Position numbers and translations under genes: made by a program. Source: Phaeosaccion multiseriatum (taxonomy: Eukaryota > Protista > Ochrophyta, other classes). From it: a stretch of 64,000 nt of DNA. Of the stretch, positions 6,075-64,000 are shown one piece after another; position 1 is the stretch's first letter; the number at the start of each line of letters is the position of its first letter. Where the stretch lies: contig OZ218957.1 of assembly GCA_965112735.1 (NCBI GenBank), positions 1,674,001-1,738,000 of the forward strand. The letters are read 5' to 3'. The notes below the pieces were generated by a model. The model searched no databases. It worked only from the letters and a program-made list of their open reading frames with translations, and had not been told where the DNA came from.

Positions 6075-7080
6075 CCTGTTGCGATACGTAAGGCCTCCCT
6101 TTATCGCAACAAGCCCCCCCCCGACCCACCCACACACACCCGCCCACCCACCCACCCACCCAGTCACCCGCTCACCCACCCACCCAGTCACCCGCTCACC
6201 CACCCACCTATCCACCCATCCACACCCACCCACCATGGTACGATGGTGCAAGCCAAGCTTCACCGTGGCGAAGATACGCAGGAGATGAGCTGGACGGCTT
6301 CGCGTCACTACATCCCCAGTCCCGAGGTATCAGCACCAGCACAAGCCCCTGCCACGCGCCCCACACGCACGCACGCTCGCAGCGCCTTCCGTCCCCGCCT
6401 CTTCTTCTCACTCGCCACCACCATGCCCTCCTCCAGCACCTCCCACTCGTCCTGCTGCTTCTCGTCATCCTCATCACCCCCTCCTCCTCCTGAGCGATAG
6501 CGCTGGTAGGCAGACACAAAGCCTCGAATCGTGCTCTCCAGGCTGGTCCCCTTCCTCTTGGTGCGCACAGCGTAGTGGGGCAGCAGCAACACCTTACTCT
6601 GGCCCACAGACACCACCACGCCATTCGACAACTCCCTGTCCCGGTGGCCCCAGCAGGCCATGGCAGCGTCGGCAGCAGCATCTTCCAGCTCTCTCCACAG
6701 ACCATTGGGAAGCTGAATCTCATCCCCGACATGAAGCCCCAGCCTAGCAAGCAAACCTCCTCCATCCCCATCCTGCTCCGCTGCTTCCTTCTCTTCCTGC
6801 TGCCTCTCCCCTCCCTCAACTGAAGGGGGGAACTTCGCCCTCTTCCTTCCTCTCGTATCGATGTCGGTGGCAGCTCCTCGCTTGGGTTCAGGCGTGCCCT
6901 GGGTTATCTCCCCCGTCTGCTCCGCTCCCTCCCTTTTCATTCGAGCATGGCGTGTACACATCCCACCACATCCACCTCTTCCTTGCTTCTCACACCCCTC
7001 CACAGTACACCTCTTAAGTATCCTCACAGCTCCATGCCTAGTGCACAATCCTCCTTGGACCCGCTGCTTCTCACACCCCT

Positions 7081-7223
7081 TTCCCCATTATCCTCTACTC
7101 TACCACCCTTACCATCCTCTTCTCCTCCACATCACGCTCCATCAATACCACACATACACACATCTACACATGGTTACAACTTACCTCGAGCGCTCCAATA
7201 CTGAGCCCATAAGCTCTAATATA
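7081..7223 (+). mobile_element. 5'-truncated retrotransposon copy A0 (143 bp of 3' UTR), 14-bp TSD
   Basis: Matches the last ~143 nt of the full element. CTTCTCACACCCCT at 7067-7080 and 7224-7237. Confidence 0.93.
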
Positions 7224-7311
7224 CTTCTCACACCCCTCCACAGTACAAGTCTTGACCACAGCTCCATGCCTAGTGCACAATCCTCCTTGGACCCGCTGCT
7301 TCTCACACCCC

Positions 7312-10300
7312 ATCTTTTTTTCTGCTTAAGACAGGGCCACCATGGAAGGGGACGACAGGGGGGCCACGCGGCCCCCCGGAGCCCAGGAGACACCAGCAAA
7401 CCTCACAGCAACCCAGCAGGAGCCACCTATGAGCCGCGATCAGCAGCGGCTCGAAAGAAGGGAGAGACGGGCAGCGGCAGCAGCAATTCGCCAAACACCA
7501 GCACGGGAAGGCGTGCCCACCCCCATCACGGCTCCACCAGCGGCCGCAGCACCCCGCAACACCCTCCCGCAGGACCCACAGCTCCCACCAGCACTCACGG
7601 AACCCACAGCAACAGCAGCGGAAGCCCACCCCCAGCAGCAGCAACCACAACCGATCTCAACGACACGGCAACAAACAGCACCAGCCGCCAGGAGATCTAC
7701 CACGCCCGCCAGCGAGACAACAGGCCCTACAACAGCACCACCCCCCACAGCGACCAGCCCAGCACCCATGCAGCCAACCACGAGGCCAAGGGGACGAAGC
7801 AGGACCCCCCGAGCACGCAGCCCGGAAAGGCCAACCGCCACTTTCCGAGCCTCAGATCCAGCCCAAACCACCAACGCGTCAACTCACAGAAACGCACACG
7901 GGATCACAGAGCAAATCGTCTCCATCCTCCAAGACGAATACGAAGACACCCACCTCACAGCCACGACCCCCATACGGCAACACCCGAACCTCTTCTTCAA
8001 CGAACAAGCGCCAGCATCCGCCAGCCGACGCATCAGCGCTGAGTTCGCAAGCCTAAACCTCACCGCGACGGAACTGACCCACCACAACACGGCCGAGGCC
8101 ATCGCCGACCTCGTACGACCACCCCCCACGACGCACGAGGAAGAGACAGCATCACTCGAAACAGACACGCATGGACACGCACCAACGACATGGAGCAACA
8201 CCATACGCCACCAGCGCGACGCGGCGCTCCCGCCTACCAACTCGCACTTCTATATGCCCCTCCTCAGACAAGCTCTAAGGAGCGGAGGCCCCCCCACCAC
8301 CCCCGGAAGACCACATGGGGGAGGAGATTACCCCCTTGGATGGCAACAGATCGTAGAGGCCTATGCCCACACGCTCGCAGGCCAAGAGATCACCTCCAAC
8401 GAGTTGGTCAACGACTACATCACCGCCTCACGACAGGAGGAACTCATCGCGGTATTACCCGACGTCCAAGCCATCGTTGAGCGCTACGGCCACGCCCTAC
8501 GCGACCACACCAACAACACCACCACCTCCCCCTTCGCCAACACCATGGCCACACCGTGGTGGGCGCCGGGGCAAGCCCTCGCCTTACGCACGAGGCAGGC
8601 CCCCCGGGGAACCGCACCAGGACCGCCAACACCCCCCACCCACAGTGACACAACCACGCCACAGACGGACGACACCCACAACAACACCACAGCGTACCGC
8701 AGGAACATTGACAACAACTACATCGCCACGGGAGTCCTCTGCAACTTCGAACAGTGCAATGACACCTTCGTCACGGTCGGCAGGTCCAGAGACCGCCTCA
8801 ACAGGCACCAGTTGAGCCACCACCCCAACCGCGGCCGAGAGTGGGAACGATGGATGCGCGAACACCACCCCCAGGCCGCGTCAATCCTGTGGTACCGCGC
8901 CAACGGCCCACAGAGCGGACCACAGAACAGAACGTATCAGCTACGTGACTGTATACGTGGATGCGGCAACCTGGCCCACAGAAACTCCGGCAGATCCCTC
9001 CTCAGAAGCTTCCCGCAAGCAGGCCTACGGCAGCCCATATGCCACACATGCATACGAGCATACGAAGCAGCACACCTCCCGGCATCGTCAACCATCCCAC
9101 CACGAGCTCGCAGCATGCCCCCACCGACAAGAGCAGGTGGGACAGACACTACACGGGAGCACGACCCGGAGGGAGAAGGGAGAGGAGAGCGAGCGGGACA
9201 CAGGGGAGGGGGACGAGGAGACCGCGACGGAAGAGTAGTAGCAGGGGGGGAGAGGGCGAAAACAGCAGAGGCGGAGGAGAGCGCCCAGCACTGGCACGGG
9301 AAGCAGCGGCAGAAGGAGGGGAAGGGCAAGCAGAGGGAGGAGGTGACGAAGCAGAAGGAGGAGGCGACCCCACCAACAACGAGGAGCTACCCAACTGCCC
9401 GGTGTGTATGGAACCGCTCACTGGCCAAGCACAAGTCGCCATGCACGAAGACGAACATCACGTGCACAACCACTGCGCATTGGGAGTCATGAGCACGTAC
9501 CCCAACCGCAACGACCACCTCTGCCCCTACTGCCGCAACCCCTGCTACCGGCACACGATCGAGCAGGCCATCACAGCACAAGGAGGGAGAGCTATGGGCC
9601 GCGCAAGGGATCGCCTAGCGAGGGAGCGCAGAGAGTCGCATCAGCAGCACGCGCAGGCCAGCCAAGGACGGCGCCGCCAGTCCCAGCCACCCCCCACCAC
9701 CCGACACACACCCCCACCCCAACCTACCGCCCCCCCAGCCCCGATATGCTGCATATGCATGTCTGACGCGGACCCCCCTTTCATCGCACCAACCACGGAG
9801 TGGCCAGTACGCACCCGACGCTGCCAACACACCGTTCACCCCGCGTGCCTCCTTCACCACCTGAACGACCAAGCCACACTGAGGAGAGCCAACCAGCAGC
9901 CCGTCATACCACCAGGCAACCTCCCCTGCCCCGCGCAAGGCTGCATGGCTGGCTACCAAGCTCAACGAGCCATCCCCGCCCTCAGGACCATCCTCACCCA
10001 AGGCAACGCAGCATCGGCCTACCAAGGCCCCCTCAACGACCTCGAGAACGCCTATCTAGGCCCAGACCCAAACGAGGACCCGTCGCGTACGGCAACGCCC
10101 CAGCACACGACAGCAACGGCCAGGCTCAACCCGTACCAACCCACCACCCCCACGGGCAGAGGAGGAGGGCGAGGGCACGCGGAAGGAGGAGGAGGAGGAG
10201 GAGGAGCAATCGCAGCAGCGCCAAGTGGAGTAGAAGGACGAAGAGGAGGACGAGGGAGGGGGGAAGGAAACGGACAAGGAGCAGCAGCAGAGAGGGGACC

Positions 10301-13300
10301 TCAGAGAGAAAGGGCAGGGGGAGATAGCACACGCACGCAAGGAACCACAGCAGCAGCAGCGAGACGAGGGGGAGGAGGACGGAGCAGAGGCCAAGGAGGT
10401 AGCGGCGGGGACGGAGGGGACGGAGAAGGGCCAGCCAACGACGATACACCCGAGGAAGGATGGCCCATGCAGCACCCAAACGTCCTCCGCCTAGGGGCCC
10501 TGGACCCGCAGGGTACCATCCTCTCAACACTCGTGTTTGAGACAGTAGCGCAGTGCAACCCCCGCCACGTAAGCTTGATTATCAGCTTACAGCAAAGAGC
10601 GCTCAACAACTGGAACAGGGCGCTGAGGGCCCACAAGAACGGACCCACCGACGCCACCCTCCACACCCTTCTGGCATGGGATGTCTTCCACCACCTCCTC
10701 CCTGCCATGCTCTTCTCTAAAGACGGAGCCTACAGCCGCCAGCAGCGGATACAGATGGTCCTCGACCTCGACATCGCCCCACTCGCACAAGCAGCGATAG
10801 CCACAGCACACGCACGCCGCCCACCACCCCCAGCACAGGCACAGACAGAGGAGCGACGGAGAGAAACCTGCGCCCACCTGCTCACCAAACCCGGAGGCCT
10901 GCACAAGGCCGCGGCGAGGCTCAGCACAAAGAGCAGAGACGGCCACCTCCCTCCCACACACGAGACCTTTCGACGCCTCCAGCAAGCGCACGTCGACGAG
11001 AGCCTCGAAGAGATCAACACAGCAGCAACAGCAGCCAGGGAGTACGCCAGAACCCAGGTGCAGGAGCACCCCGAGAATGGCAACGACGTCACCAGAGAGG
11101 AGATCAGCACAGCCATGCTGCTGACCTACCGGAGGGTCAACTACTGGAAGGGCCAAGGAGCAGACGGGCGCAGGGCGAGCCACGTCAAGTACCCCCCGGA
11201 CAGCCCCCAGGAGTACGCAATCGTGGAGGCTCTGACTGACACCTACGAGCTGCTCCGAACGGGGGACACTCCACTGCCTCCACAGCTCGCCAAACGGTGG
11301 TTCAGCACCAGCGCCGCAGCCCTCGGCGAGAAAGCGCGTCCTGTGACATCCCCCAACCTCTACCGCAGCCTCGTGGAGAGCTGTCACATGAAGCTCATCG
11401 CGGACAGGGTGGGCCCAGAGCTCAGAAGCGCAGGACAGCTAGCGGTAGCGGTCAGAGGCGGAGGGGAAACACACGCCGCAGCAGCCCAGCTAGCGCACGA
11501 TGCCGGCAAAACCGTCGTGCTGCATGACATCACCAAGGCCTACACCCGCGTGTCGCGTGCCAGAGGCGTCCTAGCCTCAGGCGCACTCCCTACCATCGAC
11601 CCAGCAGGCATCAACTACGCCATCGCCAGCCTCTCCCACGCCTCCGCCCACAACGCCCTCACACCAGACGGCACCCAGACCATCCACCAGAGCTCCGGAG
11701 TCAACCAAGGAGCACCAGAAGGGCCTCTCATGTTCGCAGCCGCCATCCACCCAGTGCTGAAAGTTCAGAACACAGCCGACACCGCAGCGAACCGCCCCAC
11801 CATCTCCGCCTACGCAGACGACCTCATGGACCAGCTGGAACCCGACGCACCCCTACAGACCTACGCCCCACGCCATGCCCATCTCCAAGCCCAATTCCGA
11901 GGCTTGGGCCTCGAGTTCAACGAGAGGAAAACGGTTTACCTCATGGGCAAAGGCAAGCAGCCAACACAGGCTGACAGGGACCACGCCCAACGGCAGGGCG
12001 CCACACTTGCCACCGAGGGTACCGTGGTAGCCGGCATCCCCGTCGGCACGGAGGAGTACATCGAAGAGTACCTCCGCAACATCCTCGGCCAAGAAGACCC
12101 CAGGGGCTACCTCCAACTCGCCAAACACTGCAGCGAGTGGGACAACACCCAGGCGGCCACCCTCGTCCTCCTCCAATGCCTCCCAGCCAGGCTCACACAC
12201 CTGGCGAGAGCCATTGACCCCTCCATCTTCCGACGCGCCCTCGGCAGCAGGGCAGACCGCACCAACAGGGCGACACTGGCCCACATCATGCGCCTCCCCG
12301 ATGCCCCCCCTCTGGAGCAGGCCGCAGATGCACAAGAGGAGCCATGGACGGAGACACAGCGCCTACAAATGCATACGGCACGGCGCTTCGGCGGCCTCGG
12401 CCTCACCAGCCTCCACGACATCGCCCCAGCAGCATACCTTGGCAACAAGATGCTCACCCTCCCCCCCCTGCTCAGCCGCACCGCACGCCGGGACGGCTCC
12501 CAAGAGAGCGCCCTACCGGACCAGCTGTTCACCAACGGAGCCCTCAAGAGCGTCGCCGACAGCGTCAACCTCCTGCACGAGGAGGGGGTCCCTGAGGCCC
12601 CCCTCATCCAAGCAGTGGGTCAGGCACAGTTCGACGAGGCCCGCTCACGCGTACTCGAGCCGCCTGACCACCAAGCCCAAGACACAGCGCGACGCAACGT
12701 GCGCAGGAGCCATCAGGCAGGCCGTCAACCGACCCACGGCGTCCAGAAGGCCCTCACCACCTTCATCCACAAACGCCGCCATGAGGAGCTGACGCAGAGC
12801 ATCGCCACCATCGACGTCACACCGGCAGAGGCACAGAGGGGAGAGGAGACACAGGAAATGGCAACAGCCCGACTCCACTCACAGCGAGGAAGGGGCGCCA
12901 TGGCCTTCCTCGGAGCGCTCCCCCACGGCCACAACACCATGGCCCCCGCAGAATGGACCATGGCCCTTCGTCGCAACCTCGGTGTCAACACGCCATACGC
13001 GGACCCGCCCCCACCCTGCCTCGGCACAGGCTGCGCCCGCACGGCAAGCACCACCCACGCCACCATCTGCCCCCGCACCGGCCTCCACAACCACACACAC
13101 CACCTCCTCGTCAAGGCCTTCGGGAGGATGATGCACAGCGTGGGCATTGGAGGAGCACGTGTAGAGGACCAGACCTGCTTCGACGGCCCCACGGGCACCC
13201 GAGCAGGCCGAGACCTACGCATGGACCTGACCTATCCCGCAGGTAGCTTCCCGGGAGCGGACGCACCCCTGCGGAGAAACCTCCTCTGCGACATCACCGT

Positions 13301-14038
13301 CACCAACCCCACCGCCCCCACTCACGTGGGACGGGCCTCCACCACGCCAGGCCACGCAGCAGCCGCCGCCGAAGAACGCAAGCGCACCCACTACCTGGGC
13401 AGTTTTCTGCCCGGGACTTCAACCCTGAAGTGCATTGCAATCGAGACGTACGGCAGACTGGGCCACCAAACGGACGAGCTCATCGAGGCGATGGCCATCC
13501 ACAAGGCATCAAGAGGGCTCGGCCCCGCAGCGGCGGCAGCCACGGGCCCCATCAAGGGCCTCCTGCGCCAACAACTGTCCCTCGCCCTTCAACGCGCCCT
13601 CTCACAGCGGGAGATCAGGTATGGCACCCTCCTTCGAGCCACCATGACGCAGCACGAAGCAGCAGAAACCCTCGACTGGGGGCTCATGGGAGCCATCGAC
13701 GGAGCGGCCGCCTGAGGAGCAGGAGTACACCAGCCAGCAGACAGCGAGACCATCAGCACACAGCATAGCAACCACAGTTAGTCACGCCTTGTCACCCGCA
13801 CCACCCACAGTAGGCTAGTTCACATATCACCTCCACCACCTCACTCCTTCCCACACCCCTTCATCTCCTCCTCCCCCCTTCACTCCCTTCCCATTCCCCA
13901 TTATCCTCTACTCTACCACCCTTACCATCCTCTTCCCCTCCACCTCACGCTCCATCAATACCACACATACACGCATCTACACATGGTTACAACTTACCTC
14001 GAGCGCTCCAATACTGAGCCCATAAGCTCTAATATACA
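7312..14038 (+). mobile_element. Full-length site-specific non-LTR retrotransposon, copy A1 (CRE-like, RLE type), 6727 bp, 11-bp TSD
   Basis: TSD TCTCACACCCC at 7301-7311 and 14039-14049. 30-nt 5' leader, one long ORF, ~320-nt C/T-rich 3' UTR ending GCTCTAATATACA, no poly(A). Confidence 0.95.
7342..13715 (+). CDS. Retrotransposon polyprotein (~2124 aa if the G-run at 9244-9250 is G8): C2H2 finger, 2 RING-like fingers, reverse transcriptase, CCHC, restriction-like endonuclease
   Basis: GCCACCATGG start. C2H2-like CNFEQC...HQLSHH near 8740; RING-like motifs at ~9396-9533 and ~9747-9944. RT motifs ARPV, GQLAVAVRGGGE, DITKAY, GVNQGAPEGP, AYADD (11811-11822), GLEFNERKT, GIPVG and RFGGLGL. C-terminal C-x4-C-x8-H-x3-C, then RMD...CDITV...EERKRTHY...AIETYGRLG. 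Copies B1 and B2 have G8 and read through this junction in frame. Confidence 0.93.
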
Positions 14039-14271
14039 TCTCACACCCCTCCACAGTACACCTCTTGACCACAGCCCCGTGCCTAACGCATAATCCTCCC
14101 TGCTGCGACTGCTTCTCACACCCCTCCACAGTACAAGTCTTTACCACAGCTCCATGCCTAGTGCACAATCCTCCTCGGACCTGCTGCTTCTCACACCCCT
14201 CCACAGTACAAGTCTTGACCACAGCTCCATGCCTAGTGCACAACCCTCCTTGGACCCGATACATCTCACAC
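14039..14271 (-). repeat. Three 75-bp zinc-finger-coding repeat units between copies A1 and A2
   Basis: Translate as CEMYRVQGGLCTRHGAVVKT / CTVEGCEKQQVRGGLCTRHGAVVKT / CTVEGCEKQSQQGGLCVRHGAVVKR / CTVEGCE. Confidence 0.92.
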
Positions 14272-14279
14272 CACACCCC

Positions 14280-17200
14280 ATCTTTTTTTCTGCTTAAGAC
14301 AGGGCCACCATGGAAGGGGACGACAGGGGGGCCACGCGGCCCCCCGGAGCCCAGGAGACACCAGCAAACCTCACAGCAACCCAGCAGGAGCCACCTATGA
14401 GCCGCGATCAGCAGCGGCTCGAAAGAAGGGAGAGACGGGCAGCGGCAGCAGCAATTCGCCAAACACCAGCACGGGAAGGCGTGCCCACCCCCATCACGGC
14501 TCCACCAGCGGCCGCAGCACCCCGCAACACCCTCCCGCAGGACCCACAGCTCCCACCAGCACTCACGGAACCCACAGCAACAGCAGCGGAAGCCCACCCC
14601 CAGCAGCAGCAACCACAACCGATCTCAACGACACGGCAACAAACAGCACCAGCCGCCAGGAGATCTACCACGCCCGCCAGCGAGACAACAGGCCCTACAA
14701 CAGCACCACCCCCCACAGCGACCAGCCCAGCACCCATGCAGCCAACCACGAGGCCAAGGGGACGAAGCAGGACCCCCCGAGCACGCAGCCCGGAAAGGCC
14801 AACCGCCACTTTCCGAGCCTCAGATCCAGCCCAAACCACCAACGCGTCAACTCACAGAAACGCACACGGGATCACAGAGCAAATCGTCTCCATCCTCCAA
14901 GACGAATACGAAGACACCCACCTCACAGCCACGACCCCCATACGGCAACACCCGAACCTCTTCTTCAACGAACAAGCGCCAGCATCCGCCAGCCGACGCA
15001 TCAGCGCTGAGTTCGCAAGCCTAAACCTCACCGCGACGGAACTGACCCACCACAACACGGCCGAGGCCATCGCCGACCTCGTACGACCACCCCCCACGAC
15101 GCACGAGGAAGAGACAGCATCACTCGAAACAGACACGCATGGACACGCACCAACGACATGGAGCAACACCATACGCCACCAGCGCGACGCGGCGCTCCCG
15201 CCTACCAACTCGCACTTCTATATGCCCCTCCTCAGACAAGCTCTAAGGAGCGGAGGCCCCCCCACCACCCCCGGAAGACCACATGGGGGAGGAGATTACC
15301 CCCTTGGATGGCAACAGATCGTAGAGGCCTATGCCCACACGCTCGCAGGCCAAGAGATCACCTCCAACGAGTTGGTCAACGACTACATCACCGCCTCACG
15401 ACAGGAGGAACTCATCGCGGTATTACCCGACGTCCAAGCCATCGTTGAGCGCTACGGCCACGCCCTACGCGACCACACCAACAACACCACCACCTCCCCC
15501 TTCGCCAACACCATGGCCACACCGTGGTGGGCGCCGGGGCAAGCCCTCGCCTTACGCACGAGGCAGGCCCCCCGGGGAACCGCACCAGGACCGCCAACAC
15601 CCCCCACCCAAAGTGACACAACCACGCCACAGACGGACGACACCCACAACAACACCACAGCGTACCGCAGGAACATTGACAACAACTACATCGCCACGGG
15701 AGTCCTCTGCAACTTCGAACAGTGCAATGACACCTTCGTCACGGTCGGCAGGTCCAGAGACCGCCTCAACAGGCACCAGTTGAGCCACCACCCCAACCGC
15801 GGCCGAGAGTGGGAACGATGGATGCGCGAACACCACCCCCAGGCCGCGTCAATCCTGTGGTACCGCGCCAACGGCCCACAGAGCGGACCACAGAACAGAA
15901 CGTATCAGCTACGTGACTGTATACGTGGATGCGGCAACCTGGCCCACAGAAACTCCGGCAGATCCCTCCTCAGAAGCTTCCCGCAAGCAGGCCTACGGCA
16001 GCCCATATGCCACACATGCATACGAGCATACGAAGCAGCACACCTCCCGGCATCGTCAACCATCCCACCACGAGCTCGCAGCATGCCCCCACCGACAAGA
16101 GCAGGTGGGACAGACACTACACGGGAGCACGACCCGGAGGGAGAAGGGAGAGGAGAGCGAGCGGGACACAGGGGAGGGGGACGAGGAGACCGCGACGGAA
16201 GAGTAGTAGCAGGGGGGAGAGGGCGAAAACAGCAGAGGCGGAGGAGAGCGCCCAGCACTGGCACGGGAAGCAGCGGCAGAAGGAGGGGAAGGGCAAGCAG
16301 AGGGAGGAGGTGACGAAGCAGAAGGAGGAGGCGACCCCACCAACAACGAGGAGCTACCCAACTGCCCGGTGTGTATGGAACCGCTCACTGGCCAAGCACA
16401 AGTCGCCATGCACGAAGACGAACATCACGTGCACAACCACTGCGCATTGGGAGTCATGAGCACGTACCCCAACCGCAACGACCACCTCTGCCCCTACTGC
16501 CGCAACCCCTGCTACCGGCACACGATCGAGCAGGCCATCACAGCACAAGGAGGGAGAGCTATGGGCCGCGCAAGGGATCGCCTAGCGAGGGAGCGCAGAG
16601 AGTCGCATCAGCAGCACGCGCAGGCCAGCCAAGGACGGCGCCGCCAGTCCCAGCCACCCCCCACCACCCGACACACACCCCCACCCCAACCTACCGCCCC
16701 CCCAGCCCCGATATGCTGCATATGCATGTCTGACGCGGACCCCCCTTTCATCGCACCAACCACGGAGTGGCCAGTACGCACCCGACGCTGCCAACACACC
16801 GTTCACCCCGCGTGCCTCCTTCACCACCTGAACGACCAAGCCACACTGAGGAGAGCCAACCAGCAGCCCGTCATACCACCAGGCAACCTCCCCTGCCCCG
16901 CGCAAGGCTGCATGGCTGGCTACCAAGCTCAACGAGCCATCCCCGCCCTCAGGACCATCCTCACCCAAGGCAACGCAGCATCGGCCTACCAAGGCCCCCT
17001 CAACGACCTCGAGAACGCCTATCTAGGCCCAGACCCAAACGAGGACCCGTCGCGTACGGCAACGCCCCAGCACACGACAGCAACGGCCAGGCTCAACCCG
17101 TACCAACCCACCACCCCCACGGGCAGAGGAGGAGGGCGAGGGCACGCGGAAGGAGGAGGAGGAGGAGGAGGAGCAATCGCAGCAGCGCCAAGTGGAGTAG

Positions 17201-22661: not shown

Positions 22662-22730
<69 letters not shown>

Positions 22731-47250: not shown

Positions 47251-47340
47251 TGGAGGGGTGTGAGAAGCATTCGCGGCAGGGAGGATTGTGCACTAGGCAT
47301 GGAGCTGTGGTCAAGACATGTACTGTGAAGGGCTGTGAGA

Positions 47341-52485: not shown

Positions 52486-52577
52486 GGGCTGTGAGAAGCA
52501 TTCGCAGCAGGGAGGATTGTGCAGTAGCCACGGAGCTGCGAGAATGCGTAAGAGGTGTACTGTGGAGGGGTGTGAGA

Positions 52578-55500
52578 TGTATATTAGAGCTTATGGACTC
52601 AGTATTGGAGCGCTCGAGGTAAGTTGTAACCATGTGTAGATGCGTGTATGTGTGGTATTGATGGAGCGTGAGGTGGAGGGGAAGAGGATGGTAAGGGTGG
52701 TAGAGTAGAGGATAATGGGGAATGGGAAGGGAGTGAAGGGGGGAGGAGGAGATGAAGGGGTGTGGGAAGGAGTGAGGTGGTGGAGGTGATATGTGAACTA
52801 ACCTACTGTGGGTGGTGCGGGTGACAAGGCGTGACTAACTGTGGTTGCTATGCTGTGTGCTGATGGTCTCGCTGTCTGCTGGCTGGTGTACTCCTGCTCC
52901 TCAGGCGGCCGCTCCGTCGATGGCTCCCATGAGCCCCCAGTCGAGGGTTTCTGCTGCTTCGTGCTGCGTCATGGTGGCTCGAAGGAGGGTGCCATACCTG
53001 ATCTCCCGCTGTGAGAGGGCGCGTTGAAGGGCGAGGGACAGTTGTTGGCGCAGGAGGCCCTTGATGGGGCCCGTGGCTGCCGCCGCTGCGGGGCCGAGCC
53101 CTCTTGATGCCTTGTGGATGGCCATCGCCTCGATGAGCTCGTCCGTTTGGTGGCCCAGTCTGCCGTACGTCTCGATTGCAATGCACTTCAGGGTTGAAGT
53201 CCCGGGCAGAAAACTGCCCAGGTAGTGGGTGCGCTTGCGTTCTTCGGCGGCGGCTGCTGCGTGGCCTGGCGTGGTGGAGGCCCGTCCCACGTGAGTGGGG
53301 GCGGTGGGGTTGGTGACGGTGATGTCGCAGAGGAGGTTTCTCCGCAGGGGTGCGTCCGCTCCCGGGAAGCTACCTGCGGGATAGGTCAGATCCATGCGTA
53401 GGTCTCGGCCTGCTCGGGTGCCCGTGGGGCCGTCGAAGCAGGTCTGGTCCTCTACACGTGCTCCTCCAATGCCCACGCTGTGCATCATCCTCCCGAAGGC
53501 CTTGACGAGGAGGTGGTGTGTGTGGTTGTGGAGGCCGGTGCGGGGGCAGATGGTGGCGTGGGTGGTGCTTGCCGTGCGGGCGCAGCCTGTGCCGAGGCAG
53601 GGTGGGGGCGGGTCCGCGTATGGCGTGTTGACACCGAGGTTGCGACGAAGGGCCATGGTCCATTCTGCGGGGGCCATGGTGTTGTGGCCGTGGGGGAGCG
53701 CTCCGAGGAAGGCCATGGCGCCCCTTCCTCGCTGTGAGTGGAGTCGGGCTGTTGCCATTTCCTGTGTCTCCTCTCCCCTCTGTGCCTCTGCCGGTGTGAC
53801 GTCGATGGTGGCGATGCTCTGCGTCAGCTCCTCATGGCGGCGTTTGTGGATGAAGGTGGTGAGGGCCTTCTGGACGCCGTGGGTCGGTTGACGGCCTGCC
53901 TGATGGCTCCTGCGCACGTTGCGTCGCGCTGTGTCTTGGGCTTGGTGGTCAGGCGGCTCGAGTACGCGTGAGCGGGCCTCGTCGAACTGTGCCTGACCCA
54001 CTGCTTGGATGAGGGGGGCCTCAGGGACCCCCTCCTCGTGCAGGAGGTTGACGCTGTCGGCGCCGCTCTTGAGGGCTCCGTTGGTGAACAGCTGGTCCGG
54101 TAGGGCGCTCTCTTGGGAGCCGTCCCGGCGTGCGGTGCGGCTGAGCAGGGGGGGGAGGGTGAGCATCTTGTTGCCAAGGTATGCTGCTGGGGCGATGTCG
54201 TGGAGGCTGGTGAGGCCGAGGCCGCCGAAGCGCCGTGCCGTATGCATTTGTAGGCGCTGTGTCTCCGTCCATGGCTCCTCTTGTGCATCTGCGGCCTGCT
54301 CCAGAGGGGGGCATCGGGGAGGCGCATGATGTGGGCCAGTGTCGCCCTGTTGGTGCGGTCTGCCCTGCTGCCGAGGGCGCGTCGGAAGATGGAGGGGTCA
54401 ATGGCTCTCGCCAGGTGTGTGAGCCTGGCTGGGAGGCATTGGAGGAGGACGAGGGTGGCCGCCTGGGTGTTGTCCCACTCGCTGCAGTGTTTGGCGAGTT
54501 GGAGGTAGCCCCTGGGGTCTTCTTGGCCGAGGATGTTGCGGAGGTACTCTTCGATGTACTCCTCCGTGCCGACGGGGATGCCGGCTACCACGGTACCCTC
54601 GGTGGCAAGTGTGGCGCCCTGCCGTTGGGCGTGGTCCCTGTCAGCCTGTGTTGGCTGCTTGCCTTTGCCCATGAGGTAAACCGTTTTCCTCTCGTTGAAC
54701 TCGAGGCCCAAGCCTCGGAATTGGGCTTGGAGATGGGCATGGCGTGGGGCGTAGGTCTGTAGGGGTGCGTCGGGTTCCAGCTGGTCCATGAGGTCGTCTG
54801 CGTAGGCGGAGATGGTGGGGCGGTTCGCTGCGGTGTCGGCTGTGTTCTGAACTTTCAGCACTGGGTGGATGGCGGCTGCGAACATGAGAGGCCCTTCTGG
54901 TGCTCCTTGGTTGACTCCGGAGCTCTGGTGGATGGTCTGGGTGCCGTCTGGTGTGAGGGCGTTGTGGGCGGAGGCGTGGGAGAGGCTGGCGATGGCGTAG
55001 TTGATGCCTGCTGGGTCGATGGTAGGGAGTGCGCCTGAGGCAAGGACGCCTCTGGCACGCGACACGCGGGTGTAGGCCTTGGTGATGTCATGCAGCACGA
55101 CGGTTTTGCCGGCATCGTGCGCTAGCTGGGCTGCTGCGGCGTGTGTTTCCCCTCCGCCTCTGACCGCTACCGCTAGCTGTCCTGCGCTTCTGAGCTCTGG
55201 GCCCACCCTGTCCGCGATGAGCTTCATGTGACAGCTCTCCACGAGGCTGCGGTAGAGGTTGGGGGATGTCACAGGACGCGCTTTCTCGCCGAGGGCTGCG
55301 GCGCTGGTGCTGAACCACCGTTTGGCGAGCTGTGGAGGCAGTGGAGTGTCCCCCGTTCGGAGCAGCTCGTAGGTGTCAGTCAGAGCCTCCACGATTGCGT
55401 ACTCCTGGGGGCTGTCCGGGGGGTACTTGACGTGGCTCGCCCTGCGCCCGTCTGCTCCTTGGCCCTTCCAGTAGTTGACCCTCCGGTAGGTCAGCAGCAT

Positions 55501-57599
55501 GGCTGTGCTGATCTCCTCTCTGGTGACGTCGTTGCCATTCTCGGGGTGCTCCTGCACCTGGGTTCTGGCGTACTCCCTGGCTGCTGTTGCTGCTGTGTTG
55601 ATCTCTTCGAGGCTCTCGTCGACGTGCGCTTGCTGGAGGCGTCGAAAGGTCTCGTGTGTGGGAGGGAGGTGGCCGTCTCTGCTCTTTGTGCTGAGCCTCG
55701 CCGCGGCCTTGTGCAGGCCTCCGGGTTTGGTGAGCAGGTGGGCGCAGGTTTCTCTCCGTCGCTCCTCTGTCTGTGCCTGTGCTGGGGGTGGTGGGCGGCG
55801 TGCGTGTGCTGTGGCTATCGCTGCTTGTGCGAGTGGGGCGATGTCGAGGTCGAGGACCATCTGTATCCGCTGCTGGCGGCTGTAGGCTCCGTCTTTAGAG
55901 AAGAGCATGGCAGGGAGGAGGTGGTGGAAGACATCCCATGCCAGAAGGGTGTGGAGGGTGGCGTCGGTGGGTCCGTTCTTGTGGGCCCTCAGCGCCCTGT
56001 TCCAGTTGTTGAGCGCTCTTTGCTGTAAGCTGATAATCAAGCTTACGTGGCGGGGGTTGCACTGCGCTACTGTCTCAAACACGAGTGTTGAGAGGATGGT
56101 ACCCTGCGGGTCCAGGGCCCCTAGGCGGAGGACGTTTGGGTGCTGCATGGGCCATCCTTCCTCGGGTGTATCGTCGTTGGCTGGCCCTTCTCCGTCCCCT
56201 CCGTCCCCGCCGCTACCTCCTTGGCCTCTGCTCCGTCCTCCTCCCCCTCGTCTCGCTGCTGCTGCTGTGGTTCCTTGCGTGCGTGTGCTATCTCCCCCTG
56301 CCCTTTCTCTCTGAGGTCCCCTCTCTGCTGCTGCTCCTTGTCCGTTTCCTTCCCCCTCCCTCGTCCTCCTCTTCCTCCTTCTACTCCACTTGGCGCTGCT
56401 GCGATTGCGCCTCCTCCTCCTCCTCCTCCTTCTTCCGCGTGCCCTCGCCCTCCTCCTCTGCCCGTGGGGGTGGTGGGTTGGTACGGGTTGAGCCTGGCCG
56501 TTGCTGTCGTGTGCTGGGGCGTTGCCGTACGCGACGGGTCCTCGTTTGGGTCTGGGCCTAGATAGGCGTTCTCGAGGTCGTTGAGGGGGCCTTGGTAGGC
56601 CGATGCTGCGTTGCCTTGGGTGAGGATGGTCCTGAGGGCGGGGATGGCTCGTTGAGCTTGGTAGCCAGCCATGCAGCCTTGCGCGGGGCAGGGGAGGTTG
56701 CCTGGTGGTATGACGGGCTGCTGGTTGGCTCTCCTCAGTGTGGCTTGGTCGTTCAGGTGGTGAAGGAGGCACGCGGGGTGAACGGTGTGTTGGCAGCGTC
56801 GGGTGCGTACTGGCCACTCCGTGGTTGGTGCGATGAAAGGGGGGTCCGCGTCAGACATGCATATGCAGCATATCGGGGCTGGGGGGGCGGTAGGTTGGGG
56901 TGGGGGTGTGTGTCGGGTGGTGGGGGGTGGCTGGGACTGGCGGCGCCGTCCTTGGCTGGCCTGCGCGTGCTGCTGATGCGACTCTCTGCGCTCCCTCGCT
57001 AGGCGATCCCTTGCGCGGCCCATAGCTCTCCCTCCTTGTGCTGTGATGGCCTGCTCGATCGTGTGCCGGTAGCAGGGGTTGCGGCAGTAGGGGCAGAGGT
57101 GGTCGTTGCGGTTGGGGTACGTGCTCATGACTCCCAATGCGCAGTGGTTGTGCACGTGATGTTCGTCTTCGTGCATGGCGACTTGTGCTTGGCCAGTGAG
57201 CGGTTCCATACACACCGGGCAGTTGGGTAGCTCCTCGTTGTTGGTGGGGTCGCCTCCTCCTTCTGCTTCGTCACCTCCTCCCTCTGCTTGCCCTTCCCCT
57301 CCTTCTGCCGCTGCTTCCCGTGCCAGTGCTGGGCGCTCTCCTCCGCCTCTGCTGTTTTCGCCCTCTCCCCCCCCTGCTACTACTCTTCCGTCGCGGTCTC
57401 CTCGTCCCCCTCCCCTGTGTCCCGCTCGCTCTCCTCTCCCTTCTCCCTCCGGGTCGTGCTCCCGTGTAGTGTCTGTCCCACCTGCTCTTGTCGGTGGGGG
57501 CATGCTGCGAGCTCGTGGTGGGATGGTTGACGATGCCGGGAGGTGTGCTGCTTCGTATGCTCGTATGCATGTGTGGCATATGGGCTGCCGTAGGCCTGC
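52578..57599 (-). mobile_element. 5'-truncated retrotransposon copy B2 (~5.0 kb), TSD TGTGAGA
   Basis: Matches the element from the equivalent of ~9020 to the 3' end. TGTGAGA at 52571-52577 and 57600-57606. Confidence 0.95.
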
Positions 57600-57606
57600 T
57601 GTGAGA

Positions 57607-58087
57607 TGTATATTAGAGCTTATGGGCTCAGTATTGGAGCGCTCGAGGTAAGTTGTAACCATGTGTAGATGCGTGTATGTGTGGTATTGATGGAGCGTGA
57701 TGTGGAGGGGAAGAGGATGGTAAGGGTGGTAGAGTAGAGGATAATGGGGAATGGGAAGGGAGTGAGGGGGGGAGGAGGAGATGAAGGGGGGTGGGAAGGA
57801 GTGAGGTGGTGGAGGTGATATGTGAACTATCCTACTGGGGGTGGTGCGGGTGACAAGGCGTGACTAACTGTGGTTGCTATGCTGTGTGCTGATGGTCTCG
57901 CTGTCTGCTGGCTGGTGTACTCCTGCTCCTCAGGCGGCCGCTCCGTCGATGGCTCCCATGAGCCCCCAGTCGAGGGTTTCTGCTGCTTCGTGCTGCGTCA
58001 TCGTGGCTCGAAGGAGGGTGCCATACCTGATCTCCCGCTGTGAGAGGGCGCGTTGAAGGGCGAGGGACAGTTGTTGGCGCAGGAGGC
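57607..58087 (-). mobile_element. 5'-truncated retrotransposon copy B3 (481 bp), directly tandem to B2
   Basis: End of the ORF plus the 3' UTR, flanked by TGTGAGA at 57600-57606 and 58088-58094. Confidence 0.93.
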
Positions 58088-58169
58088 TGTGAGATGTATC
58101 GGGTCCAAGGAGGGTTGTGCACTAGGCATGGAGCTGTGGTCAAGACTTGTACTGTGGAGGGGTGTGAGA

Positions 58170-61100
58170 TGTATATTAGAGCTTATGGGCTCAGTATTGG
58201 AGCGCTCGAGGTAAGTTGTAACCATGTGTAGATGCGTGTATGTGTGGTATTGATGGAGCGTGAGGTGGAGGGGAAGAGGATGGTAAGGGTGGTAGAGTAG
58301 AGGATAATGGGGAATGGGAAGGGAGTGAAGGGGGGAGGAGGAGATGAAGGGGTGTGGGAAGGAGTGAGGTGGTGGAGGTGATATGTGAACTAGCCTACTG
58401 TGGGTGGTGCGGGTGACAAGGCGTGACTAACTGTGGTTGCTATGCTGTGTGCTGATGGTCTCGCTGTCTGCTGGCTGGTGTACTCCTGCTCCTCAGGCGG
58501 CCGCTCCGTCGATGGCTCCCATGAGCCCCCAGTCGAGGGTTTCTGCTGCTTCGTGCTGCGTCATGGTGGCTCGAAGGAGGGTGCCATACCTGATCTCCCG
58601 CTGTGAGAGGGCGCGTTGAAGGGCGAGGGACAGTTGTTGGCGCAGGAGGCCCTTGATGGGGCCCGTGGCTGCCGCCGCTGCGGGGCCGAGCCCTCTTGAT
58701 GCCTTGTGGATGGCCATCGCCTCGATGAGCTCGTCCGTTTGGTGGCCCAGTCTGCCGTACGTCTCGATTGCAATGCACTTCAGGGTTGAAGTCCCGGGCA
58801 GAAAACTGCCCAGGTAGTGGGTGCGCTTGCGTTCTTCGGCGGCGGCTGCTGCGTGGCCTGGCGTGGTGGAGGCCCGTCCCACGTGAGTGGGGGCGGTGGG
58901 GTTGGTGACGGTGATGTCGCAGAGGAGGTTTCTCCGCAGGGGTGCGTCCGCTCCCGGGAAGCTACCTGCGGGATAGGTCAGGTCCATGCGTAGGTCTCGG
59001 CCTGCTCGGGTGCCCGTGGGGCCGTCGAAGCAGGTCTGGTCCTCTACACGTGCTCCTCCAATGCCCACGCTGTGCATCATCCTCCCGAAGGCCTTGACGA
59101 GGAGGTGGTGTGTGTGGTTGTGGAGGCCGGTGCGGGGGCAGATGGTGGCGTGGGTGGTGCTTGCCGTGCGGGCGCAGCCTGTGCCGAGGCAGGGTGGGGG
59201 CGGGTCCGCGTATGGCGTGTTGACACCGAGGTTGCGACGAAGGGCCATGGTCCATTCTGCGGGGGCCATGGTGTTGTGGCCGTGGGGGAGCGCTCCGAGG
59301 AAGGCCATGGCGCCCCTTCCTCGCTGTGAGTGGAGTCGGGCTGTTGCCATTTCCTGTGTCTCCTCTCCCCTCTGTGCCTCTGCCGGTGTGACGTCGATGG
59401 TGGCGATGCTCTGCGTCAGCTCCTCATGGCGGCGTTTGTGGATGAAGGTGGTGAGGGCCTTCTGGACGCCGTGGGTCGGTTGACGGCCTGCCTGATGGCT
59501 CCTGCGCACGTTGCGTCGCGCTGTGTCTTGGGCTTGGTGGTCAGGCGGCTCGAGTACGCGTGAGCGGGCCTCGTCGAACTGTGCCTGACCCACTGCTTGG
59601 ATGAGGGGGGCCTCAGGGACCCCCTCCTCGTGCAGGAGGTTGACGCTGTCGGCGACGCTCTTGAGGGCTCCGTTGGTGAACAGCTGGTCCGGTAGGGCGC
59701 TCTCTTGGGAGCCGTCCCGGCGTGCGGTGCGGCTGAGCAGGGGGGGAGGGTGAGCATCTTGTTGCCAAGGTATGCTGCTGGGGCGATGTCGTGGAGGCTG
59801 GTGAGGCCGAGGCCGCCGAAGCGCCGTGCCGTATGCATTTGTAGGCGCTGTGTCTCCGTCCATGGCTCCTCTTGTGCATCTGCGGCCTGCTCCAGAGGGG
59901 GGCATCGGGGAGGCGCATGATGTGGGCCAGTGTCGCCCTGTTGGTGCGGTCTGCCCTGCTGCCGAGGGCGCGTCGGAAGATGGAGGGGTCAATGGCTCTC
60001 GCCAGGTGTGTGAGCCTGGCTGGGAGGCATTGGAGGAGGACGAGGGTGGCCGCCTGGGTGTTGTCCCACTCGCTGCAGTGTTTGGCGAGTTGGAGGTAGC
60101 CCCTGGGGTCTTCTTGGCCGAGGATGTTGCGGAGGTACTCTTCGATGTACTCCTCCGTGCCGACGGGGATGCCGGCTACCACGGTACCCTCGGTGGCAAG
60201 TGTGGCGCCCTGCCGTTGGGCGTGGTCCCTGTCAGCCTGTGTTGGCTGCTTGCCTTTGCCCATGAGGTAAACCGTTTTCCTCTCGTTGAACTCGAGGCCC
60301 AAGCCTCGGAATTGGGCTTGGAGATGGGCATGGCGTGGGGCGTAGGTCTGTAGGGGTGCGTCGGGTTCCAGCTGGTCCATGAGGTCGTCTGCGTAGGCGG
60401 AGATGGTGGGGCGGTTCGCTGCGGTGTCGGCTGTGTTCTGAACTTTCAGCACTGGGTGGATGGCGGCTGCGAACATGAGAGGCCCTTCTGGTGCTCCTTG
60501 GTTGACTCCGGAGCTCTGGTGGATGGTCTGGGTGCCGTCTGGTGTGAGGGCGTTGTGGGCGGAGGCGTGGGAGAGGCTGGCGATGGCGTAGTTGATGCCT
60601 GCTGGGTCGATGGTAGGGAGTGCGCCTGAGGCTAGGACGCCTCTGGCACGCGACACGCGGGTGTAGGCCTTGGTGATGTCATGCAGCACGACGGTTTTGC
60701 CGGCATCGTGCGCTAGCTGGGCTGCTGCGGCGTGTGTTTCCCCTCCGCCTCTGACCGCTACCGCTAGCTGTCCTGCGCTTCTGAGCTCTGGGCCCACCCT
60801 GTCCGCGATGAGCTTCATGTGACAGCTCTCCACGAGGCTGCGGTAGAGGTTGGGGGATGTCACAGGACGCGCTTTCTCGCCGAGGGCTGCGGCGCTGGTG
60901 CTGAACCACCGTTTGGCGAGCTGTGGAGGCAGTGGAGTGTCCCCCGTTCGGAGCAGCTCGTAGGTGTCAGTCAGAGCCTCCACGATTGCGTACTCCTGGG
61001 GGCTGTCCGGGGGGTACTTGACGTGGCTCGCCCTGCGCCCGTCTGCTCCTTGGCCCTTCCAGTAGTTGACCCTCCGGTAGGTCAGCAGCATGGCTGTGCT

Positions 61101-64000
61101 GATCTCCTCTCTGGTGACGTCGTTGCCATTCTCGGGGTGCTCCTGCACCTGGGTTCTGGCGTACTCCCTGGCTGCTGTTGCTGCTGTGTTGATCTCTTCG
61201 AGGCTCTCGTCGACGTGCGCTTGCTGGAGGCGTCGAAAGGTCTCGTGTGTGGGAGGGAGGTGGCCGTCTCTGCTCTTTGTGCTGAGCCTCGCCGCGGCCT
61301 TGTGCAGGCCTCCGGGTTTGGTGAGCAGGTGGGCGCAGGTTTCTCTCCGTCGCTCCTCTGTCTGTGCCTGTGCTGGGGGTGGTGGGCGGCGTGCGTGTGC
61401 TGTGGCTATCGCTGCTTGTGCGAGTGGGGCGATGTCGAGGTCGAGGACCATCTGTATCCGCTGCTGGCGGCTGTAGGCTCCGTCTTTAGAGAAGAGCATG
61501 GCAGGGAGGAGGTGGTGGAAGACATCCCATGCCAGAAGGGTGTGGAGGGTGGCGTCGGTGGGTCCGTTCTTGTGGGCCCTCAGCGCCCTGTTCCAGTTGT
61601 TGAGCGCTCTTTGCTGTAAGCTGATAATCAAGCTTACGTGGCGGGGGTTGCACTGCGCTACTGTCTCAAACACGAGTGTTGAGAGGATGGTACCCTGCGG
61701 GTCCAGGGCCCCTAGGCGGAGGACGTTTGGGTGCTGCATGGGCCATCCTTCCTCGGGTGTATCGTCGTTGGCTGGCCCTTCTCCGTCCCCTCCGTCCCCG
61801 CCGCTACCTCCTTGGCCTCTGCTCCGTCCTCCTCCCCCTCGTCTCGCTGCTGCTGCTGTGGTTCCTTGCGTGCGTGTGCTATCTCCCCCTGCCCTTTCTC
61901 TCTGAGGTCCCCTCTCTGCTGCTGCTCCTTGTCCGTTTCCTTCCCCCCTCCCTCGTCCTCCTCTTCGTCCTTCTACTCCACTTGGCGCTGCTGCGATTGC
62001 TCCTCCTCCTCCTCCTCCTCCTTCCGCGTGCCCTCGCCCTCCTCCTCTGCCCGTGGGGGTGGTGGGTTGGTACGGGTTGAGCCTGGCCGTTGCTGTCGTG
62101 TGCTGGGGCGTTGCCGTACGCGACGGGTCCTCGTTTGGGTCTGGGCCTAGATAGGCGTTCTCGAGGTCGTTGAGGGGGCCTTGGTAGGCCGATGCTGCGT
62201 TGCCTTGGGTGAGGATGGTCCTGAGGGCGGGGATGGCTCGTTGAGCTTGGTAGCCAGCCATGCAGCCTTGCGCGGGGCAGGGGAGGTTGCCTGGTGGTAT
62301 GACGGGCTGCTGGTTGGCTCTCCTCAGTGTGGCTTGGTCGTTCAGGTGGTGAAGGAGGCACGCGGGGTGAACGGTGTGTTGGCAGCGTCGGGTGCGTACT
62401 GGCCACTCCGTGGTTGGTGCGATGAAAGGGGGGTCCGCGTCAGACATGCATATGCAGCATATCGGGGCTGGGGGGGCGGTAGGTTGGGGTGGGGGTGTGT
62501 GTCGGGTGGTGGGGGGTGGCTGGGACTGGCGGCGCCGTCCTTGGCTGGCCTGCGCGTGCTGCTGATGCGACTCTCTGCGCTCCCTCGCTAGGCGATCCCT
62601 TGCGCGGCCCATAGCTCTCCCTCCTTGTGCTGTGATGGCCTGCTCGATCGTGTGCCGGTAGCAGGGGTTGCGGCAGTAGGGGCAGAGGTGGTCGTTGCGG
62701 TTGGGGTACGTGCTCATGACTCCCAATGCGCAGTGGTTGTGCACGTGATGTTCGTCTTCGTGCATGGCGACTTGTGCTTGGCCAGTGAGCGGTTCCATAC
62801 ACACCGGGCAGTTGGGTAGCTCCTCGTTGTTGGTGGGGTCGCCTCCTCCTTCTGCTTCGTCACCTCCTCCCTCTGCTTGCCCTTCCCCTCCTTCTGCCGC
62901 TGCTTCCCGTGCCAGTGCTGGGCGCTCTCCTCCGCCTCTGCTGTTTTCGCCCTCTCCCCCCTGCTACTACTCTTCCGTCGCGGTCTCCTCGTCCCCCTCC
63001 CCTGTGTCCCGCTCGCTCTCCTCTCCCTTCTCCCTCCGGGTCGTGCTCCCGTGTAGTGTCTGTCCCACCTGCTCTTGTCGGTGGGGGCATGCTGCGAGCT
63101 CGTGGTGGGATGGTTGACGATGCCGGGAGGTGTGCTGCTTCGTATGCTCGTATGCATGTGTGGCATATGGGCTGCCGTAGGCCTGCTTGCGGGAAGCTTC
63201 TGAGGAGGGATCTGCCGGAGTTTCTGTGGGCCAGGTTGCCGCATCCACGTATACAGTCACGTAGCTGATACGTTCTGTTCTGTGGTCCGCTCTGTGGGCC
63301 GTTGGCGCGGTACCACAGGATTGACGCGGCCTGGGGGTGGTGTTCGCGCATCCATCGTTCCCACTCTCGGCCGCGGTTGGGGTGGTGGCTCAACTGGTGC
63401 CTGTTGAGGCGGTCTCTGGACCTGCCGACCGTGACGAAGGTGTCATTGCACTGTTCGAAGTTGCAGAGGACTCCCGTGGCGATGTAGTTGTTGTCAATGT
63501 TCCTGCGGTACGCTGTGGTGTTGTTGTGGGTGTCGTCCGTCTGTGGCGTGGTTGTGTCACTGTGGGTGGGGGTGTTGGCGGTCCTGGTGCGGTTCCCCGG
63601 GGGGCCTGCCTCGTGCGTAAGGCGAGGGCTTGCCCCGGCGCCCACCACGGTGTGGCCATGGTGTTGGCGAAGGGGGAGGTGGTGGTGTTGTTGGTGTGGT
63701 CGCGTAGGGCGTGGCCGTAGCGCTCAACGATGGCTTGGACGTCGGGTAATACCGCGATGAGTTCCTCCTGTCGTGAGGCGGTGATGTAGTCGTTGACCAA
63801 CTCGTTGGAGGTGATCTCTTGGCCTGCGAGCGTGTGGGCATAGGCCTCTACGATCTGTTGCCATCCAAGGGGGTAATCTCCTCCCCCATGTGGTCTTCCG
63901 GGGGTGGTGGGGGGGCCTCCGCTCCTTAGAGCTTGTCTGAGGAGGGGCATATAGAAGTGCGAGTTGGTAGGCGGGAGCGCCGCGTCGCGCTGGTGGCGTA
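58170..64000 (-). mobile_element. Retrotransposon copy B4 (over 5.8 kb; 5' end outside the window)
   Basis: Same 3' junction after GGGGTGTGAGA, and collinear with A1 to the window end. Confidence 0.95.

Follow-up and report, generated by a model that had tools for sequence, protein, structure and literature searches.

The 64,000-bp stretch of Phaeosaccion multiseriatum contig OZ218957.1 analyzed here (positions 1,674,001 to 1,738,000 of assembly GCA_965112735.1, hereafter the window) contains two inverted paralogous host genes, A and B, whose zinc-finger coding repeats are interrupted by copies of one 6727-bp element encoding a reverse transcriptase (RT) and a putative restriction-like endonuclease (RLE). 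With a full-length copy as query, blastn detects nine copies (Table 1): two are full length, six are truncated at differing points of their 5' ends, and one is cut by the end of the window. Three of them lie on the forward strand at 7.1-21.0 kb and six on the reverse strand at 47.0-64.0 kb, and their identity to the reference, copy 2, ranges from 97.3 to 100%. The same search gives no further real match in the window; an 81-bp match of 75% identity at 28934-29011 is a GGA simple repeat and was rejected as a copy. The nine copies share one 3' junction and have eight different 5' ends, the truncated ones retaining 53, 75, 148, 481, 5025, and 5147 bp. Copy 2 has a leader of 30 nt and a 3' untranslated region (UTR) of 323 nt, lacks poly(A), and terminates in ...TAATATACA. 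The two end sequences of the element are mutually unrelated and terminal repeats are absent. An earlier reading made from the DNA alone (the sequence-only reading) had described nine copies, all antisense in a 75-bp zinc-finger repeat and none elsewhere in the window, which blastn and Tandem Repeats Finder bear out; the copy sizes that it gave (52, 75, 143, 481, about 5020, and 5145 bp, and full length) are right within a few bases, the exact lengths differing slightly.

Insertion sites in the window and across the genome

All copies in the window lie antisense within a coding repeat, for which Tandem Repeats Finder also gives a period of 75 bp (14039-14272 and 46873-47045). Read on the strand opposite to that of the element, this repeat encodes units of 25 residues, CTVEGCEKQ...GGLC..HGAVVK, i.e., CTVEGCEKQRVQGGLCTRHGAVVKR, and three such units match Pfam Zf_WRKY19 (PF24906) with an E-value of 1.8e-13 and 50.4 bits, against a cut-off of 27. 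The word GGGGTGTGAGA, allowing at most one mismatch, is found 25 times in the window, compared with 3.0 times expected, and none of 100 shuffles reaches 25. By our reading, 9 of the 14 original target units in the window are occupied.

The element 3' terminus can be written ...GCTCTAATATAC(A), followed by the flank TCTCACACCCCTCCACAG, in every window copy. More specifically, the junction common to all copies is ...TAATATAC(A) joined to TCTCACACCCC, which reads ...TAATATACA joined to TCTCACACCCC in seven of the nine copies and ...TAATATAC joined to TTCTCAC in the other two, the same division as previously described. The 3' flank, TCTC[A/G]CACCCCTC, is the reverse complement of GAG GGG TGY GAN A. 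These 13 bases at the element 3' end correspond to the codons of Glu4-Gly5-Cys6-Glu/Asp7 and the first base of Lys8, and the Glu4-Gly5-Cys6-Glu/Asp7 codon stretch is the least variable part of the repeat.

Target-site duplications of 6-16 bp are found in seven of the eight window copies in which both sides are readable, and of 5-16 bp when the copies fetched from the rest of the genome are included; duplications in most copies had been anticipated correctly, if at 7-17 bp, and copy 4 has none. Both halves of the copy 6 duplication carry the rare variant TCTCACAGCCC, which shows that this is a true duplication of the local target. Copy 7 was inserted into the target word regenerated beside copy 8, forming a head-to-tail pair.

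In the whole genome, there are 101 exact matches to the last 17 bases of the element, distributed over eight contigs (C1, C2, C5, C7, C8, C11, C12, and C13). We fetched 24 islands totaling 266 kb and comprising about 55% of these 3' ends; they contain 60 copies, 54 of which have a 3' end, and yield 49 distinct junctions after removal of obvious segmental duplicates. Tabulation of the flanks places 48 of the 49 junctions at T-N-T-C-R-C-A-C-C-C-C-T-C, instead of mostly at unrelated sites, and around 30 different 5' truncation points are seen in this set, indicating that the insertions are independent events, as had been argued from the window against segmental duplication. The sole exception is a 219-bp 3' fragment in a (CA)n tract, TCACACAC (G000:C13:1085659-1085877), which resembles the core of the target word and hints at the bases that may be most important for recognition. 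Three target dialects are used, which differ by synonymous or conservative changes: Cys is encoded by TGT or TGC, and the codon after it is GAG, GAC, or GAA. The strict 18-mer target TCTCRCACCCCTCMACAG occurs 162 times in 67 Mb, compared with 0 for the reversed control, and of the 99 C1 sites listed for this 18-mer, at least 18 immediately follow the 3' end of an element copy. The same junction is seen in two old copies (82-83% identical) at about 452.7 and 453.6 kb of C1, from which it follows that the specificity arose before the current burst. A copy on C2 (85% identical) has a diverged 3' UTR and no definable junction.

A second RLE-type long interspersed nuclear element (LINE) family of the same genome, with 34% identity in the nuclease domain (E-value around 1e-26), provides a comparison. 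It is present in many near-identical, dispersed copies, and the 3' flanks of the eight copies read (Table 1) are all unrelated. This family ends in ...TTAAGTCAATAAAG, and its 3' UTR contains a (CA)n tract of variable length. Since its flanks are unrelated, the method does detect nonspecific insertion when it is present, and the site specificity is a property of the studied lineage and not of all RLE elements of this genome. A third RLE family, at 31% identity, also occurs there.

At the 5' side, the junctions of full-length copies (16 junctions) show a variable C-rich filler between the host TCTCRCAC and the element TTCTTTTTTT, including ACCC, CCCACACCC, and CCCTAGCACCCCCC (e.g., window positions 7295-7320 and 14258-14290), and the variable C-rich start of these copies, (C)ACACCC(C), resembles the target. 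The filler at C1:204432 carries the A of C8-type targets, where the local target has a G, which indicates that target-like bases travel with the element 5' end. We also observe that the host unit just 5' of copies 3 and 8 (14258-14279 and 58088-58100) reads ...CCGATACA followed by TCTCACA. The host strand there reads GAG ATG TAT CGG, ATACA being the last five bases of the element, which displace five host bases. This looks like the footprint of an aborted 5-nt insertion, replacing Lys-Gln by Met-Tyr in the finger.

The host gene family and the element protein

The host flanks of the two window genes are duplicated as well (5508-5767 and 21655-21914, direct, 95%; 21121-21547 and 46298-46700, inverted), from which we conclude that genes A and B stem from an inverted segmental duplication. 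The insertions differ between the two genes and are therefore younger than this duplication. Genome-wide, the host family comprises around 70-125 paralogous genes, with open frames of 240-610 residues, grouped in clusters on C8 (91-97% identical), C1 (72-76%), and C13/C2 (60-67%). Besides the zinc-finger units, the host genes encode a C-terminal domain of about 200 residues, which has 125 matches in the genome, most of them free of stops. A search of 5.8 billion proteins, limited to a length window, gave no homologue of this domain; it also has no match in the ESM Atlas or in Pfam, and its AlphaFold2 model is unusable (predicted local distance difference test, pLDDT, of 35). The host family is lineage-specific.

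Several features support the view that the target is, as the sequence-only reading had proposed, a protein-coding zinc-finger repeat, and that it is under constraint. In addition to the Pfam match above cut-off, the codon-position diversity among 91 distinct units is 0.22, 0.17, and 0.34 at positions 1, 2, and 3, and the ratio of nonsynonymous to synonymous substitution rates (dN/dS) between the clusters is 0.42-0.48. Val3, Leu15, and Gln12, which are outside the search pattern, vary almost only synonymously; C1, C6, C16, and H19 are invariant in the 91 units, as the search pattern itself demanded. An exon resembling a PHD finger (CAVC...C..EYHVRC) lies between two host-family genes at C1:372783-373142, and this inter-gene unit of about 5 kb contains no transposase-like open reading frame (ORF).

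The element encodes a single protein of about 2120-2170 residues where the frame is unbroken. Copy 2 shows two overlapping frames, 7342-9492 and 8961-13715, but these were rejected as separate ORF1 and ORF2: they are one frame broken at a run of seven G, and in at least two copies outside the window the frame stays open through the nuclease domain, for 2132 and 2172 residues (C8:1548532 and C8:1572695). One extra G is present at the G run in five of the eight copies aligned there, and the frame of copy 3 is interrupted in several places. All contigs of two sequencing runs, X3 and X4, have an extra base at 50181 and 51114, for which reason some of the frame breaks may be assembly homopolymer errors or minority variants.

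The first frame part of copy 2, with its Cys/His cluster, gives no Pfam match; the two frame pieces were searched separately, not joined, here and in the other domain searches. In the second part lie two RING-like Cys/His clusters, then the RT, the CCHC finger, and the nuclease. The RING-like clusters match Pfam zf-RING_2 weakly (E-value 0.006, below cut-off) and are a candidate DNA- or protein-binding module; RING-like fingers were sought in the N-termini of ten relatives, in which no Pfam domain was found. The RT matches PF00078 with an E-value of 6e-7 (29.8 bits, cut-off 29.6). A profile of the family matches the L1 ORF2p and R2 RT palms equally (around 1e-13), with group II intron, retron, and retroviral RTs ranking behind them, and places the RT among LINE RTs, but in no particular clade.

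The nuclease region carries the motifs RMD (13215-13232), CDITV (13281-13301), K..HY (13371-13394), and IETYGRLG (13440-13463). The alignment of relatives shows the usual RT motifs followed by the series C...C...H...C, H, E, (R)MD, LxD(V/I)T, K..HY, and E..GR.G, with C64, H77, C81, H91, D133, D155, and a G column invariant in 35 relatives. The AlphaFold2 model of the last 295 residues has a pLDDT of 91.6, and R2 proteins take the first seven places among its PDB matches (each scored as nearly or fully certain), followed by cap-snatching PD-(D/E)XK nucleases and Prp8. This modeled fold supports a PD-(D/E)XK-like RLE in the C-terminal region. Neither frame piece matches an apurinic/apyrimidinic (APE) endonuclease (Exo_endo_phos; Pfam, E-value up to 1), in agreement with the earlier claim of an RLE-bearing element, and no Myb, RNase H, or protease domain was found in the element with Pfam. 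An Rfam search of 6900-14400 (E-value up to 1) gave no ribozyme.

A cassette of about 0.9 kb (element positions around 1490-2400, window around 8800-9710), reaching from the end of the first Cys/His cluster across the first RING-like cluster, exists in two versions that are only 94.6% identical. The rest of the element is about 99.6% identical between cassette types, giving a mosaic pattern. Both versions are present at C1- and C8-type targets, and no link between cassette type and target dialect is seen in the fetched copies.

Table 1 Features of the window and loci of the second RLE family. Positions are those of the window unless a contig is given.
Feature	Position	Strand	Description
Copy 1	7077-7224	+	148 bp, 5'-truncated, element positions 6579-6726, 97% identical to copy 2
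Copy 2	7312-14038	+	Full length, 6727 bp, reference copy
Copy 3	14280-21000	+	Full length, 6721 bp, 99.7% identical to copy 2
Copy 4	47046-47120	-	75-bp 3' fragment, no target-site duplication
Copy 5	47198-47250	-	53-bp 3' fragment, 16-bp target-site duplication
Copy 6	47341-52485	-	5147 bp, starts at element position 1582
Copy 7	52578-57600	-	5025 bp, starts at element position 1707
Copy 8	57607-58087	-	481 bp, starts at element position 6247
Copy 9	58170-64000	-	At least 5835 bp, runs off the window end
First frame part (copy 2)	7342-9243	+	Frame 1, Cys/His cluster CNFEQC...HQLSHH at 8740-8823
G7 run	9244-9250	+	Point where the copy 2 frame breaks
Second frame part (copy 2)	9251-13715	+	Frame 3, open from 8949, first ATG 8961
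Two RING-like clusters	9396-9944	+	CPVC...CPYC 9396-9545; CCIC...CPAQGC 9747-9944
RT core	11325-11945	+	GEKARPV, GQLAVAVRGGGE, HDITKAY, GVNQGAPEGPLMF, YADDL
CCHC finger and putative RLE	13017-13463	+	CCHC at 13017-13070
Host gene A	about 21078 down to 6308	-	Zinc-finger units and C-terminal domain
Host gene A, 3' part	6308-7311	-	Last zinc-finger units and orphan C-terminal domain, open frame 6308-7048
Host gene A, other units	14039-14279; 21001-21078 (start region)	-	Zinc-finger units
Host gene B	46742-47045	+	Start codon and first three Zf_WRKY19 units, PF24906
Host gene B, further units	47121-47197, 47251-47340, 52486-52577, 58088-58169	+	Zinc-finger units
Second RLE family, loci read	C1:4.58 Mb, C2:1.47 and 4.84 Mb, C7:2.03 Mb, C9:1.35 and 1.68 Mb, C12:2.44 Mb, C13:3.09 Mb

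Insertion model and alternative explanations

The fixed 3' end, the 5' truncations, the duplications, and the LINE-type RT agree with the retrotransposon without long terminal repeats (non-LTR) initially proposed. We consider it highly probable that the element is a young, site-specific, RLE-bearing non-LTR retrotransposon of an early-branching kind, homing to the zinc-finger repeat of a paralogous gene family. By analogy with R2, its protein would recognize the word of about 13 bp GAGGGGTGYGAGA and nick the host coding strand between GAGA and AG. The freed 3'-OH would then prime reverse transcription of the element RNA from its 3' UTR (target-primed reverse transcription), and a cut of the second strand 6-16 bp away would generate the target-site duplication. 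The 5' end would be joined last, incomplete copying giving the 5' truncations. At this final step, target-like bases at the RNA 5' end may help joining by microhomology, as suggested by the C-rich start that resembles the target and that carries a C8-type base at one C1 site. Each insertion restores the target word at its 3' side, with new copies able to land beside old ones, and this regeneration gives rise to the head-to-tail arrays. Recombination between near-identical copies probably produced the duplication halves that differ by one base and the duplicated blocks on C1. The 70-125 or so paralogous genes would offer many equivalent sites and spread the cost of insertion over redundant genes.

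Several points weigh against this model. In 21 of 48 copies, no duplication is detected by a simple exact-match test; most of these cases reflect a single mismatch at position 2, additional bases, or an adjoining copy, and recombination between copies must therefore also have shaped the arrays. Some copies are segmental duplicates, as at C1:680-693 kb, where the same truncations recur every 4.1 kb or so. The copies read amount to only about half of those in the genome, and the frames are broken in both full-length copies of the window. For the nick position, the order of the strands, and the function of the N-terminal fingers, the model relies on the junctions and on R2. The four available runs, contigs of unknown kind from one sample, are probably of the source DNA.

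As an alternative, the copies could all derive from one or a few chance insertions, multiplied inside the tandem gene arrays through segmental duplication, unequal crossing-over, and gene conversion, with no sequence-specific integration at all. The tandem clustering of the host genes would favor such a spread, as would the C1:680-693 kb region, where two truncated copies are repeated three to four times, and the mismatched duplication halves of several copies, which suggest recombination between copies. Nevertheless, some 30 different 5' truncation points share one 3' junction, the duplications match the local target variant (TCTCACAGCCC, TGTTACACC, and TATCGCACCCC), the copies are found on eight contigs in three synonymously differing dialects, and the one off-target copy lies in a target-like (CA)n tract. 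This explanation is already largely refuted and we find it hardly credible. A different possibility is that insertion is specific, but that the site is chosen mainly by base pairing of target-like RNA ends with the nicked DNA and not by protein recognition. Full-length copies do start with (C)ACACCC(C), which resembles the target CACACCCC, the C-rich stretch at one C1 site came with the element (C8-type A, local G), and duplication halves often differ at position 2. However, the invariant junction is the 3' one, where the element end, ...TAATATACA, is unlike the target, 5'-truncated copies without the C-rich start use the same site, and the second RLE family, which has the same kind of nuclease, is not site-specific, which makes a choice by base pairing very doubtful.

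The nature of the target can also be questioned, since it could be a repeat family that is selfish, associated with transposons, or in decay, and whose open frames are simply retained, comparable to Tx1D, the target of Tx1L. The orphan C-terminal domain, blank in protein, ESM Atlas, and Pfam searches and with a pLDDT of only 35, would fit such a family, and so would its roughly 100 clustered copies. The repeat also scores 26.8 bits against PF18721 (CxC6, associated with KDZ transposases), just below the cut-off of 27.5, and a dN/dS near 0.45 reflects only moderate constraint. This value is nevertheless well below 1, open frames of 240-610 residues persist in paralogues as little as 60% identical, the zinc ligands do not vary while neighboring residues change synonymously, and the inter-gene unit of about 5 kb on C1 has only the PHD-like exon and no transposase-like ORF. 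We therefore regard a selfish target as unlikely, and keep to a constrained protein-coding repeat as the site to which the element homes.

Insertions into such genes might be tolerated if the host splices the element out. On the host strand, the element 3' end forms an open, in-frame piece of 14 codons, MYIRAYGLSIGALE, ending in GAG followed by GTAAGT (e.g., 47046-47086 and 13998-14038), and the host GAGAAGCAG (AAGCAG) just beyond the element 5' end is a candidate acceptor. Splicing from GAG/GTAAGT to AAGCAG would remove any copy, whatever the length of its truncation or duplication, with a net addition of 36 nt, or 12 codons in frame. When the run contigs are aligned to 46720-52719, the joints fit other genomic copies and none lies between the proposed splice sites, a result that is uninformative on expression. 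Removal by splicing seems quite doubtful to us; if true, the zinc-finger family would be a true safe harbor, and new introns and peptide inserts could arise from the element.

Relationship to known elements

An exhaustive HMMER search gave 841 relatives, the best of which is 32% identical over the RT-nuclease part (E-value 2e-77). All 20 relatives looked up are environmental proteins, unnamed or annotated as 'hypothetical protein'. A word-indexed protein search with the RT-nuclease part gave no match, a profile search gave seven matches without informative names, and the ESM Atlas matches are 'hypothetical protein' clusters only, one near cluster being commonest in Euglenozoa, which is a weak lead. 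Four environmental contigs of relatives, which end at or near the ORF, contain no zinc-finger repeats. In one of the environmental relatives (24% identical), the element is followed head-to-tail by a 5'-truncated copy of itself with the same end, ...GTACATATTACT (4640-5460 of the contig). This arrangement suggests that relatives may also be site-specific, with another target.

The site-specific LINEs listed in the sources consulted target ribosomal RNA (rRNA), spliced-leader, transfer RNA, and small nuclear RNA (snRNA) genes, other transposons, microsatellites, and telomeres. As the sequence-only reading had surmised, full-text literature searches found no described element with a protein-coding repeat as its target, and a 2026 review of R2 contains no such example (PMC13586686). 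The present element shows that machinery of this type can also settle on a sequence dictated by protein constraint, namely the Glu-Gly-Cys codons of a zinc finger. A redundant protein-gene family can then serve as an element reservoir, extending the idea of a multicopy safe harbor from RNA genes to coding repeats, and the locus illustrates how a mobile element remodels and inactivates the genes of a zinc-finger family in nature, and may also diversify them. It also offers a new specificity of about 13 bp for the RLE-type enzymes that are under development for break-free gene insertion, with the nonspecific second family of the same genome, which shares the nuclease-domain family but inserts in a dispersed manner, as a ready comparison for locating the protein part that sets the specificity.

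Among known systems, R2 has the same layout of one long protein with N-terminal fingers, RT, CCHC finger, and C-terminal PD-(D/E)XK nuclease, its structures are the best matches of the nuclease-domain model, and it shows the same fixed 3' junction, variable 5' truncation, absence of poly(A), and head-to-tail arrays in a multicopy target. However, the sequence similarity to R2 is limited to the RT palm (E-value 0.22 with a single sequence, about 1e-13 with the profile, L1 being equal), neither a Myb domain nor a ribozyme like that of hepatitis delta virus is detected in the studied element, and its target is a protein-coding repeat instead of the 28S rRNA gene. Co-transcription with the target cannot supply the element RNA, because the element enters in antisense.

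The CRE clade (CRE1/2, SLACS, CZAR, and MoTeR/FoTeR) likewise consists of protist and fungal RLE LINEs with N-terminal Cys/His fingers and multicopy targets, although these targets are spliced-leader genes or telomeres. Thousands of CRE-clade LINE copies are found in Ectocarpus, a brown alga and stramenopile (PMC12477816). Membership of this clade is defined by RT phylogeny; a CRE affinity of the element, as suggested in the sequence-only reading from motifs such as IETYGRLG, is plausible in view of the Ectocarpus copies. The NeSL/Utopia group comprises RLE LINEs specific for spliced-leader and U2 snRNA genes, including oomycete families (Kojima and Jurka 2015, PMC4640811), and the strength of their specificity differs between families (PMC4640811). 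These are also site-specific elements of stramenopiles, with several copies per array of a low- or middle-copy target (PMC4640811). In contrast to our element, Utopia targets an RNA gene and no protein-coding repeat is among the targets listed, and the RNase H of oomycete Utopia and the C48 protease of NeSL are not detected in the element. In kind, the element is thus a site-specific RLE LINE like R2, CRE/SLACS, NeSL/Utopia, and R4, and the protein-coding target is the new part.

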